A DNA stretch of 64,000 nt from IMGVR_UViG_3300042367_000228:248001-312000; one strand, 5' to 3'; shown: positions 5,951 through 9,844, counted from the first letter of the stretch. Translations and numbers: made by a program. The notes: generated from the sequence alone by a model not told the origin.

Positions 5951-6718
5951 TTACCTCGAAACGGCTGTATTTGAATTTACAATACTGCTTGAATTAGTTG
6001 ACCTTACAGTAATTGTATTATGATCTCCAATTGTACTAATATCTATCATAGAATCGTTAGTACCTTGCTGCTGTGTTACAACAGAGTTGTAACTCCCAGT
6101 AAAATCTTGTACTAGATGATGCCCGATACCTCCATCGTCTTGTTCGTTAATGAAACTGTTAAACCCGCCACTTACTGTTGTATCTACTACACCGTTAGTG
6201 CTATTTAATCGTGTTGTAACTTCATTGTTACTGCCATTAATATCAATTGTACTATGTATGCTACCTTTAGTTAAACTTTGTATAACATAGTTTAAATCAC
6301 CAGTAATTGTTTCAGTAACAACATTAGCATTTACTGGAGTACCAAGTCCAATGTTAAGTAACGTTTGATTTTGATTACCTTTAATGATACTAGAATATAT
6401 ATTATTTGCTCCGCTAATATTATATTGTGCCCAGTTAGTATCTCCAGTGTGCGACAATGTTACTTGGTTAGAATTACCCGTAATAGTCGCATAATTTGAT
6501 GAGCTTGCAGCAGCTGGTACAAAAGCTGTAATAGTGTTACTGGAACTATATAACAAAGGATTGTTAAGAGTTGTACCACTAACGTTATTAGCTCCGCCAA
6601 TCTGATCAATAACGATTGTATTTGCATTTCCGACTTGTTCAATGTATACATTGTTTACTCCTGTACTTGCTGCAAACACTGGACTACTTATTAGTAGTAG
6701 TAGTATTAGTTGTTTCAT
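5951..6718 (-). CDS. Curlin-like repeat protein (CsgA/CsgB-like)
   Basis: Signal peptide; N/Q/G/S-rich repeats (VYIEQVGNANTIVIDQIG, TGSYNSVVTQQQGTN); directly downstream of csgG. Confidence 0.65.
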   Translation of the reverse strand: MKQLILLLLISSPVFAASTGVNNVYIEQVGNANTIVIDQIGGANNVSGTTLNNPLLYSSSNTITAFVPAAASSSNYATITGNSNQVTLSHTGDTNWAQYNISGANNIYSSIIKGNQNQTLLNIGLGTPVNANVVTETITGDLNYVIQSLTKGSIHSTIDINGSNNEVTTRLNSTNGVVDTTVSGGFNSFINEQDDGGIGHHLVQDFTGSYNSVVTQQQGTNDSMIDISTIGDHNTITVRSTNSSSIVNSNTAVSR

Positions 6719-7538
6719 TTTTTAGCTCCTGTGGCGCTTCTTTAAAAGCCCAATGACCTTTCTTAGCACCTTCTTTAATAGTTTCGACCACAGCGGCTTG
6801 AATAGCTTTGTTAGTCGCTTTGTTAATACTTTCATTTATACTTCCGCCCACTTCTGTTTCTAATGCTTTAGTATCTGAAGAGAACATTCTTAATACACCG
6901 ACTTTATCCATATAACTTAGTACGGTTTTAGTTACTACAACTGATGTTAGAATTTCACCAGATGTTACTGATACAATTCTTAAACTTACTGTAACAGTAT
7001 CGCTTTGATATTGAGTTTCACCACCTATGCCAAATATCCTTACACCTGCTCCGCCTGTGATTGTATTTGAATCGTAGCCAACAACTGCGCCTTCTGCAAT
7101 AATTCCAGCAAATGTCATAGCTGGTAATGAAGTAGCATCTTTGCCTTGGAACTGTTCGCGTGTTTGGCGAATCATTTGACGCTCTTTAACTAGGTTGTCT
7201 AAGCCAACGCGTTCTAGTACTACAAACCAACGACTATCACCGACTTCTTTTAATGACTTGATTAAATAGTTTTCAGCACCTTGAGTAATTGCAGAACTTA
7301 AACTAGCAATGTTTGGTATTGATTTGCGTTGTCCAGTTTTATCCGTAAAACCGTATACTGCAATTGGAATAGGTCCACCTTGCGGCGGAGCTAAATAATT
7401 TTCTTCTTTTTTTAAATACGGTGTATTGTCAACGATTGGATCGTCAAACTGTTCACCTGTTATAAGTTTTTCAATTGAACTACTTGCTGCACATCCTTGT
7501 AGTAGTAGAATAATTGCTAATAATAGTAATTTTTTCAT
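6684..7538 (-). CDS. csgG: Curli secretion channel lipoprotein CsgG
   Basis: Lipobox LQGC; IAVYGFTDKTGQRK, SAITQGAENYLI, WFVVLERVGLDNLVKERQMIR, EGAVVGYDSN. Confidence 0.92.
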   Translation of the reverse strand: MKKLLLLAIILLLQGCAASSSIEKLITGEQFDDPIVDNTPYLKKEENYLAPPQGGPIPIAVYGFTDKTGQRKSIPNIASLSSAITQGAENYLIKSLKEVGDSRWFVVLERVGLDNLVKERQMIRQTREQFQGKDATSLPAMTFAGIIAEGAVVGYDSNTITGGAGVRIFGIGGETQYQSDTVTVSLRIVSVTSGEILTSVVVTKTVLSYMDKVGVLRMFSSDTKALETEVGGSINESINKATNKAIQAAVVETIKEGAKKGHWAFKEAPQELKNETTNTTTTNK

Positions 7539-7545
7539 AGTTACC

Positions 7546-8022
7546 TCAAAAATAGAAAGTACCGGCCGGTACTTTCATTGTTGTTGTTTGATTTGGATTA
7601 CTATTACTTGTAATATTGATAATAATTAGTCCATTATCTGTACCTGATCCTAATCCCCATGTAACCGTGTTTCCACCTAAGTCTGGAATATTTCCACAAG
7701 TTGCACCTGGGATAGTACATGTAGACCCTTCGGCAAACATGCTATCAGTAAGTTGTTTTGCTAGTTGTGAATAGATCCTTGATTCTAAGTTTGCTAAGAA
7801 TTTAGCCGCTGGCGTATTAGCTGCTGCTGATGCTGCTTTAGCTGCTAATGAATCTGCAAGTGATTTGTTTTTTTCAACACCTTGTTGTTCTAACTGTTGG
7901 ATAGTTAGAATGTGATTGCTATACCCAATTCCGCTAAATGATGGACTATTAAATGAGTGTTGGAGTTCAGCAGAAAATGCTGATGATGATACTAGTAGTA
8001 ATAATACTAAGATTTTGTTCAC
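7546..8022 (-). CDS. csgF: Curli assembly protein CsgF
   Basis: Signal peptide then ELQHSFNSPSFSG (CsgF N-terminal F.NPsFgG motif), F..NLESRIYSQLAKQL; adjacent to csgG. Confidence 0.85.
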   Translation of the reverse strand: MNKILVLLLLVSSSAFSAELQHSFNSPSFSGIGYSNHILTIQQLEQQGVEKNKSLADSLAAKAASAAANTPAAKFLANLESRIYSQLAKQLTDSMFAEGSTCTIPGATCGNIPDLGGNTVTWGLGSGTDNGLIIINITSNSNPNQTTTMKVPAGTFYF

Positions 8023-8129: not shown

Positions 8130-8921
8130 ATGAGAATTTCTGAATTACTTGAAAATGATGGACAATTAGGACTTCCGTTTCAAGATGAACCTACAGATTT
8201 ACAACCAAGAGTAAAACAAAAACGTGTTAAAAAAGACTACGGTCAGACACCTGAAAGACCAGAATTAAGATTTAGTTTAGAAGATCATCCAGAATTAAAA
8301 GCTGCAGCTCAAGCTGTTAAAGCTGGAAAGATGTCTAGAGCAGAATATACAGCATTAGTAAAAAAATATAAACCAGTAAGACCGTATGATTATGTTCCTA
8401 CACCTGCAAGTGAAAAAGATATGAATCGCGGGTTAGATGCTGATAAACGTCATAAGATTAATTCACATATTGCAGACGGTGATGTGGTGCAATTACGATT
8501 AGACATCCCTGCGTATAATCATAAAAATGTGTGGGTTCCAACTATTCACAATAAAGCTGGAATTGCTATTTCTCATAGAGGAGCAGCAGTTATTAATAAT
8601 GTAACCATTAAGTTACCGCAAAAAGGTTCAATGAACATTGCAACAGGCGAAACTAGTAAAGTTCCAATTGCTACTCTAAAAGGTTTTTGGGAAGAAGTAT
8701 CGCCTGAAGATGCAAAGACAGAAGCAATGGCTGCGTTACATGATAAGAATTGGGCTCAGGTAGGTATGGATCCTAAACGACATGCATTCTTCTATGATAG
8801 AAAAACTGAAAGACCTATTATTGGTGGATCACGTGCTGTACAAGTAGGACCGTTAGTGTTAATTAAAGATCCTATCTATGACGATGATGGTGAATATATT
8901 TACGAACGAAATAAAAGATAA
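8130..8921 (+). CDS. Hypothetical late protein with N-terminal MRISELLE tag
   Basis: 263-aa ORF; TAAATA at 8101-8106 and AAGGA SD. Confidence 0.75.
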   Translation: MRISELLENDGQLGLPFQDEPTDLQPRVKQKRVKKDYGQTPERPELRFSLEDHPELKAAAQAVKAGKMSRAEYTALVKKYKPVRPYDYVPTPASEKDMNRGLDADKRHKINSHIADGDVVQLRLDIPAYNHKNVWVPTIHNKAGIAISHRGAAVINNVTIKLPQKGSMNIATGETSKVPIATLKGFWEEVSPEDAKTEAMAALHDKNWAQVGMDPKRHAFFYDRKTERPIIGGSRAVQVGPLVLIKDPIYDDDGEYIYERNKR

Positions 8922-8929
8922 ATAACTTT

Positions 8930-9035
8930 AACAACTTAGGACCGTCACAGTTATCTGTGCCTAAGGCGTCAAGGTTGCCCTACCTAACAGTTTGAGATTC
9001 GCTACCTCTTACAACTGTAAACAGGGCTTTTTTTT
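8930..9035 (+). ncRNA. Candidate structured small RNA
   Basis: TAAATA at 8919-8924; stems CTTAGG/CCTAAG, CACAG/CTGTG, AGGT/ACCT, ACAGTT/AACTGT, GCCCT/AGGGC; ends in T8; no ORF. Confidence 0.5.
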
Positions 9036-9037
9036 GA

Positions 9038-9844
9038 CTAGACTAATCTAGCTCTATAATCGTCTAAAGTTTGATAAATTGATTTTAAGTATCTACGATA
9101 TGCTTTTTCGTATCCCGGTTCGGCTCTACCTTTAAAATCACTATAAGTATGTGATTGTTTTGATATTTCTTTTAAGAATACATTAATAGCAGTGGATTGT
9201 TCTTGAGGTGATAGTTTATGAATCTTACTAATTAGATCTGATGCCGCTTCTTGTGCGTATGCTGCGATTTCGTCAGGTTGTGATTTATATATTTCTCTAG
9301 CACGAATCTGTTCTTCTTCACTTTTAAATTCATCTTGTATTAACGCTGTAAAGAATTTAATTTTATCTCTTTCAACATATCCATGTTTGTATTCGTATCG
9401 TTGTCCGTGACTTACTTGTTTAGCATGTGTTACTTCGTGTAAGAATACAGAAGTTAAGTGATTAATGATAGTGTTAATATCGTTAGCATCGATATTATCA
9501 GTATAATGTTTAAATAATAATTTAATTAAGTTTGCAATTACTTTTGGAGCAATTGTTATAGTATTAGTATCTTCAATATATTGTCCAGTACCTTGTGCTA
9601 ACGATTTAAATTGTATAGTAACATCAGTATTTGTTATTTGTTTTGCGTAGTGTGTTAGAATAGGTTTAATAGAATTAACAAATAACGTATTGTACTTAAC
9701 CATAAATTGCATATCCATTTTTTGGATAGGAGTTTGAGGTCGGGTATTAAACACATTCATAACCGCATCATGCAATGCATTATTAATTTCTGGAGCAACG
9801 TTTGTTAATGATATACGTTCGTATAATAATTCTCTAATTTTCAT
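9038..9844 (-). CDS. Zincin-like metallopeptidase with MKIRELLYE tag
   Basis: FLHEVTH (HExxH) plus downstream DEIAAYA; TATAAATA upstream (~9866-9873). Confidence 0.65.
   Translation of the reverse strand: MKIRELLYERISLTNVAPEINNALHDAVMNVFNTRPQTPIQKMDMQFMVKYNTLFVNSIKPILTHYAKQITNTDVTIQFKSLAQGTGQYIEDTNTITIAPKVIANLIKLLFKHYTDNIDANDINTIINHLTSVFLHEVTHAKQVSHGQRYEYKHGYVERDKIKFFTALIQDEFKSEEEQIRAREIYKSQPDEIAAYAQEAASDLISKIHKLSPQEQSTAINVFLKEISKQSHTYSDFKGRAEPGYEKAYRRYLKSIYQTLDDYRARLV

Follow-up and report, generated by a model that had tools for sequence, protein, structure and literature searches.

The 116-nt spacer between two convergent ORFs of a lake-water phage genome carries one copy of a widespread family of predicted structured RNAs of about 100 nt. 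The family is not filed in any of the databases searched, and its members are carried mostly once per genome by giant (jumbo) bacteriophages, including the cultured phage PA5oct. The fold is well supported by covariation, whereas a function can only be inferred. The window analysed here is the whole 64,000-nt stretch, positions 248,001-312,000 of a 372,016-bp IMG/VR phage record (IMGVR_UViG_3300042367_000228, hereafter G000) with direct terminal repeats, rated 100% complete. The family comprises at least 236 distinct sequences in IMG/VR phage contigs and shares one architecture: an A-rich leader (AAGAACA in most members); a P1 domain that displays the near-invariant CCUUAGGACC, in the longer form C(C)UUAGGACC; a 4-bp P2 hairpin with a 6-7 nt loop (GGCUGCU in most members); a P3 hairpin, most often with the loop NNNCGCUAC; a YAAA junction; and a 3' strand that pairs with the P2 loop to give an H-type pseudoknot. 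The window copy shows the P1 motif, the P2-tail pseudoknot over 5 bp and the P3 hairpin, and thus falls within the family as defined. The coordinates are summarized in Table 1.

Table 1. Positions of the element, its parts and associated features (window coordinates unless another record is named).
Record	Position	Strand	Feature	Sequence or detail
Window	6684-7538	-	ORF matching CsgG	E 2.5e-48
Window	7546-8022	-	ORF matching CsgF	E 6e-06
Window	8130-8921	+	Upstream ORF, 263 aa	TAA stop at 8919-8921; no Pfam or PHROG family
Window	8752-8902		Single contig from an RNA library	151 nt, inside the upstream ORF
Window	8845-8853	+	Second exact UAGGACCGU	inside the upstream ORF, 92 nt before the element
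Window	8917-8924	+	T4-late-type promoter-like motif	GATAAATA, overlaps the stop codon
Window	8926-8934	+	A-rich 5' leader	UUUAACAAC
Window	about 8930	+	Predicted transcript start	inferred from T4 late-promoter spacing
Window	8935-8965	+	P1 domain	conserved CUUAGGACCGU at 8935-8945
Window	8935-8940 with 8960-8965	+	P1 outer helix	CTTAGG/CCTAAG
Window	8941-8945	+	P1 bulge	ACCGT
Window	8946-8959	+	P1 inner hairpin	CACAG/CTGTG
Window	8972-8985	+	P2 hairpin	AGGT 8972-8975 with ACCT 8982-8985, loop TGCCCT
Window	8977-8981	+	Pseudoknot, 5' strand	GCCCT
Window	8987-9018	+	P3 hairpin	ACAGTT 8987-8992 with AACTGT 9013-9018; GAG 8994-8996 with CTC 9006-9008
Window	8997-9005	+	P3 apical loop, 9 nt, closed by a G-C pair	ATTCGCTAC (AUUCGCUAC in the RNA)
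Window	9019-9022	+	A-rich junction	AAAC
Window	9023-9027	+	Pseudoknot, 3' strand	AGGGC
Window	9028-9035	+	U8 tract	likely 3' end of the RNA
Window	9034-9060	+	Sigma70-type promoter-like sequence	TTGACT, 15-nt spacer, TATAAT
Window	9038-9844	-	Convergent ORF, 268 aa	only weak metallopeptidase hits
G000:C1	242596-243017	-	Permuted (two-piece) tmRNA	about 5 kb before the window starts
PA5oct	115,460-115,569		Family member	E 8.6e-8
L012	3820-3950		Diverged copy (same place as L071)	follows the 268-aa homologue on the same strand
G005:C1	76936-77024	+	Degenerate paralogue (locus L332)	
G006:C1	118544-118635	+	Lone P3-like hairpin (locus L333)	GCAGG / loop CUUCGCUAC / CCUGC; E 0.02

The preliminary description had recorded, from the sequence alone, a late promoter overlapping the upstream stop, nearly complete pairing over about 105 nt, two possible pseudoknots and a terminal T8. 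Its observation held up: every helix it listed is present. The exception is the second pseudoknot, between CGC in the P3 loop and GCG at 8966, which has no family support; those bases lie in or next to the variable 3' strand of P1, which reads GUGU, GGGU, GAGU or AUGU in other members. The minimum-free-energy fold of the + strand is -34.2 kcal/mol (z-score of -3.65 against shuffles), but the - strand folds almost as well (z = -3.14), and folding energy alone therefore proves little. The decisive evidence is comparative, namely the recurrence of the architecture in related phages with compensatory changes.

To find relatives, we first examined homologs of the flanking genes. Close relatives of the 263-aa gene carry the same element directly after it, although the gene that follows the element differs. 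In the relative locus L012, a 53%-identical homolog of the 268-aa gene is followed by a diverged copy in the opposite relative orientation; this copy shares two short blocks with the window, while the stem around the second block is completely different. The two blocks were used as a pattern to scan IMG/VR, which returned at least 120 rows; about 70 of the 106 distinct matches shared the whole architecture. Two further scans, each leaving one conserved block unconstrained, again returned at least 120 rows each, and a profile search over all loci retrieved gave the 236 distinct sequences, so that this figure is a lower bound. The core CCUUAGGACC was conserved even when it was not required by the search pattern, with rare variants reading GGACCU, GGACCA or GGGCC. 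A scan of one genome for each of 185,579 prokaryote species gave six matches, all in MAG contigs, of which three are true family members. The family is therefore phage-specific as far as can be seen.

RNAalifold on a plain MAFFT alignment recovered only P2, because P1 and lower P3 have indels. We therefore supplied the structure by hand, built a covariance model and used it to align 78 matches. In this alignment P2 is 98.4% paired and all four pairs show changes on both sides; the three best-aligned pseudoknot pairs are 89% paired, with 20 double changes at one pair; the P3 closing pair is G-C in 66 sequences, A-U in 9 and U-A in 1, and the next pair shows 42 double changes. The overall covariation score is 0.52 against 0.19 for shuffles (0 of 500 as high), and it drops to 0.24 or less when the partners are slid by one to three columns. 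Thus P2, the top of P3 and the pseudoknot covary strongly. Members were also aligned to an nhmmer profile. In a separate test there were 28 distinct P2 loops, and the minority loops match their own tails over 5.3 contiguous base pairs on average, against 3.45 for the tails of other members. We concluded that the pairing of GCCCU with AGGGC in the window is a bona fide family pseudoknot. G.U pairs outnumber A.C mismatches 70 to 21, which indicates that the + strand is the folded strand. A is present in at least 90% of sequences at the junction in two alignments of members. The covariance model scores the window at 59.0 bits (E 2.8e-12), although this score is not independent because the window was part of the seed; PA5oct, which was not in the seed, scores 39.6 bits.

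The inner part of P1 ranges from a bare 4-bp stem with a 9-nt loop to versions with an extra hairpin. The P3 loop is modular. When it was not imposed by the search pattern, only about half of the members (57 of 111) had AUUCGCUAC, and the others had AUCCGCUAC, AAUCGCUAC, ACUCGCUAC, AACCGCUAC or CCUCCGCUAC, a quite different loop containing ACGCCAUUC, a loop containing GGAGUCGUGCCC, or a short stub. The P1 loop and the pseudoknot are unchanged across these variants; the invariant core is therefore the P1 loop plus the pseudoknot, and P3 looks like an exchangeable add-on. No pairing between the P1 and P3 loops was found, and the phage genome holds only chance-level complements of either conserved loop. 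No other hairpin in G000 presents the P3 loop. The second exact UAGGACCGU in the upstream ORF (Table 1) and the one in the element are the only two occurrences in the 372-kb genome; the former may be chance or a remnant.

The model found one strong match in each of ten jumbo contigs (G000 and nine others), including four records of 338-372 kb rated 97-100% complete, and G000 has no second copy even at permissive thresholds. One complete 353-kb relative, G005, has, besides its normal copy, a degenerate paralogue that keeps P2, a P3 with the loop UCGCUAC and the AAGUGAGCA tail, but has CCUUAAAC in place of the GGACC motif. In another genome, G006, a lone P3-like hairpin occurs without the rest of the element, at a weak model match. 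Among cultured phages PA5oct has one unannotated copy, which starts at the stop codon of gp295 and is followed by a classical terminator hairpin. It was found only with the covariance model: megablast and blastn of the locus and of two elements against 50,697 phage records found no match. A terminase gene next to a family member in another contig has its best cultured match in Pseudomonas phage PA5oct and other jumbo phages, at about 52% identity. RaK2, Atu_ph07, Phosso, Vibrio phage 2.275.O and T4 gave no match at E<=1, although an empty answer there is weak evidence.

Next, we compared the element with known RNAs. None of the 4227 Rfam 15 models (including twister, HDV-like, pistol, hatchet, hammerhead, pRNA, riboswitches and phage RNAs) reached its gathering score anywhere in the 64-kb window, and at E 0.2-10 only spurious miRNA, snoRNA or sRNA matches appeared for the window and three other family variants. 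ARAGORN found no tRNA or tmRNA in the window; in the rest of the genome it called a permuted tmRNA (Table 1) and 7 tRNAs. A search of papers for the motif strings returned only unrelated miRNA hits, and a 2026 ribozyme preprint has no phage classes. The preliminary description had proposed a ribozyme-like or protein-binding ncRNA, made late, more elaborate than a terminator needs and not assignable to a known family. This interpretation is partly supported: the element is a real, conserved, structured non-coding element without a known family, its first pseudoknot is real, and it is more elaborate than termination needs, but the double pseudoknot has no family support, the ribozyme idea has no positive evidence, and protein binding, which we also prefer, remains an inference.

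A new class of small self-cleaving ribozyme, processing a polycistronic or 3'-extended transcript to free the RNA or the downstream message, is a doubtful alternative. The size, the pseudoknot and the invariant unpaired nucleotides resemble small ribozymes, most copies would need some 5' processing to be freed from the upstream mRNA, and phages carry such ribozymes (PMC10879173). However, no covariance model for twister, twister-sister, pistol, hatchet, hammerhead or HDV-like ribozymes reached E<=10 on four variants, the topology lacks the nested double pseudoknot of HDV or twister because the second pseudoknot is not supported, the P3 module can be swapped freely, and self-cleavage would be a conjecture from the fold alone.

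The upstream gene is co-directional with the element in 62 of 70 loci, and its stop lies within about 13 nt of the element or at the UAG inside the conserved motif. A stop-codon recoding signal was rejected because the position of this stop varies, from inside the element to 13 nt before it. The upstream genes are unrelated between lineages. The most frequent downstream neighbor is an 86-aa DsbA-like protein, present in 84 of 236 loci (36%), with only a weak Pfam match to T4 DsbA (E 0.003) and a match to phrog_12534; a family-B DNA polymerase accompanies it downstream in 30 loci. In loci such as L024, L044, L099 and L164 this forms a recurrent module of the element, a sigma70-type promoter, the DsbA-like gene and the polymerase gene, which could point to a locus-specific role. 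Otherwise the neighbors are diverse (large terminase, desaturase, ferritin-like proteins, nucleases and others), which argues against a leader tied to one gene. Within about 60 nt after the pseudoknot strand, 26% of members have a U-tract, 17% a sigma70-type promoter and 29% a TAAATA motif. The element therefore closes the upstream transcription unit and does not lead the downstream one, which argues against a conventional leader or riboswitch. The promoter-like sequence directly after U8 in the window would fire antisense into the convergent 268-aa gene; since many members have a sigma70-type promoter at this position for a co-directional gene, it may be a relic. Two adjacent ORFs upstream of the 263-aa gene match the curli secretion components CsgG and CsgF (Table 1), an unusual pair for a jumbo phage.

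This placement also fits a cis-acting 3'-end element, i.e., a structured terminator, insulator or 3'-exonuclease block that would define or protect the end of the upstream mRNA and keep read-through out of the next unit. The element directly follows the upstream stop codon, U-tracts or a separate terminator follow it, the promoters of the next genes lie downstream of it, and most copies have no promoter of their own. Against this, there is one copy per genome of about 350 kb with hundreds of gene ends, the upstream genes are unrelated between lineages, 74% of members lack a U-tract, and ten near-invariant unpaired bases and a covarying pseudoknot are far more than termination or stability needs. 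We consider this reading unlikely, though the strongest of the rivals. In the window a simple terminator scan found none, because the loop is too large, whereas the minimum-free-energy fold places the GCCCU/AGGGC helix, enclosing P3, directly before U8. A ligand-sensing RNA, in which ligand-stabilized pseudoknot formation would complete the terminator stem and tune read-through, is less likely still. H-type pseudoknot aptamers with an A-rich junction are common, for example preQ1-II/III and SAM-II, and the 3' pseudoknot strand abuts the U-tract in the window and in 26% of members; but the downstream genes are diverse and usually have their own promoter after the element, most members have no U-tract, and no known riboswitch model matches.

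The least likely reading, already disfavored, is that the element is not an RNA gene at all but a chance-elaborate bidirectional terminator between convergent genes, or a DNA-level site such as a recombination, packaging or origin site. In its favor, the window copy lies between convergent ORFs and both strands fold; gene order breaks exactly at its 3' edge between close relatives (in the relative loci L003-L005 the gene after the element is replaced, with the breakpoint right after the U-tract); and in L012 the element is inverted relative to the 268-aa gene. Against it are the compensatory changes in three helices and a pseudoknot, the G.U over A.C asymmetry, the tie of its strand to that of the upstream gene, the absence of a GC-skew inflection at the site, and conservation of the family far beyond what the flanking genes show.

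We then examined whether the window copy may have its own late promoter. Its motif GATAAATA differs in the first base from the canonical T4-type TATAAATA, which is expected about 6 nt upstream of the start. In the window GATAAATA occurs 12 times against 6.2 expected, while TATAAATA is not enriched (10 against 13.7). In the whole genome 16 of 37 GATAAATA lie 5-45 nt upstream of called starts, and NATAAATA does so in 25-43% of its occurrences, whatever the first base, against 0-8% (one rare 8-mer 20%) for control 8-mers. The late-promoter-like core in this phage is ATAAATA with any preceding base, followed by T in 67% of cases. The 263-aa gene has such a motif itself, and the genome encodes a relative of the T4 late sigma factor gp55 (E 3.7e-7). 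The motif is kept in the relative loci L003-L006 and L088, even where the flanking protein is only 79% identical. A late promoter is thus plausible for this lineage, with the start site inferred from spacing alone. Only 15 of 227 members, the window's lineage among them, have a late-promoter-like motif of their own at a fixed distance, so most copies must be co-transcribed with the upstream gene, which fits a cis role equally well. Transcription itself is inferred: 23 lake or freshwater DNA runs hold the stretch, but the single RNA-library run has one contig there, which does not cover the element, and the PA5oct copy is not among the four ncRNAs annotated from RNA-seq in that phage (PMC7318152).

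Taken together, the analysis demonstrates a real family with three hairpin domains and an H-type pseudoknot maintained by compensatory changes, a near-invariant unpaired motif in P1, a conserved A-rich junction, an exchangeable apical module on P3, one full copy per complete genome, restriction to phages as far as can be seen, and placement at the very end of a co-directional upstream gene and ahead of the next gene's own promoter. The remainder is inference. For this phage, the RNA would be made late, starting either at its own GATAAATA promoter or as the tail of the late mRNA for the 263-aa gene, and would end at U8, where the pseudoknot/P3 helix may double as the terminator stem. As to function, the rigid scaffold, the ten-base exposed P1 loop, single-copy status and indifference to neighboring genes fit best with a stand-alone, diffusible RNA that binds a conserved phage or host macromolecule, as an RNP component or a decoy, with the pseudoknot core presenting the P1 loop and the P3 loop as a lineage-specific add-on. 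No partner protein or target was identified, and we hold this reading only tentatively, at somewhat less than even confidence; nothing we could compute excludes a cis 3'-end element, a ribozyme or a ligand-sensing RNA. It is possible, though on balance unlikely, that the family is a new functional RNA class rather than just an orphan motif: a new self-cleaving ribozyme or ligand-binding fold, or the RNA subunit or decoy of a conserved jumbo-phage or host protein machine, with the swappable P3 loop setting lineage-specific recognition. A ten-base invariant loop on a pseudoknot scaffold usually marks a specific molecular partner or a catalytic or ligand pocket, and whichever it is would be a new piece of giant-phage biology. 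Jumbo phages have few known non-coding RNAs beyond tRNAs and tmRNA, and this one is found in hundreds of uncultured giant phages from lakes and other habitats. Its presence in PA5oct, a cultured model with existing RNA-seq data, makes its function directly testable, and the family is a candidate for filing in Rfam.

Orphan structured RNAs of phages are already known as a kind, and the family described here is a new one among them. Like the orphan motifs found by comparative genomics in phages and metagenomes (Weinberg et al. 2017, PMC5737381; Fremin et al. 2023, PMC10690425), it is intergenic, supported by covariation, of unknown function and abundant in IMG/VR contigs; it matches no Rfam 15 model, and it may be among the 8,495 unnamed IMG/VR candidates of Fremin et al. 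The phi29 packaging RNA (pRNA) is likewise a single-copy, phage-encoded structured RNA of about 100-170 nt with conserved loops, and acts as a component of a protein machine, but there is no sequence or model similarity, the phage group differs, the two conserved loops here are neither complementary to each other nor covarying, and no link to packaging is shown. Small self-cleaving ribozymes with pseudoknots (twister, HDV-like or theta, pistol, hatchet) are similar in size, have a pseudoknot and invariant unpaired bases and occur in phage intergenic regions, yet no model matches, only one pseudoknot is supported here and no catalytic-core signature is present. Terminator-ended and 3'UTR-derived bacterial small RNAs share the location at the 3' end of a coding transcript, the U-tract found in many members and, sometimes, a promoter inside the end of the upstream gene; those RNAs act through short seed pairing and are poorly structured, whereas this one has a rigid conserved tertiary-type fold and no detectable target complement. 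The H-type pseudoknot aptamers (preQ1-II/III, SAM-II) and the T4 gene 32 mRNA pseudoknot have the same topology with an A-rich strand before the 3' pairing strand, but here a whole hairpin (P3) is inserted in loop 3, there is an extra conserved P1 domain, the element is not in a 5' leader of a conserved gene, and no model matches. In the PeSL cassettes of T4-type phages a stem-loop is combined with an early promoter; similarly, an early sigma70-type promoter immediately follows the element in 17% of members and gene-order breakpoints lie at its edge, but PeSLs are simple hairpins present in many copies per genome, whereas this element is a pseudoknotted RNA of about 100 nt present once per genome.
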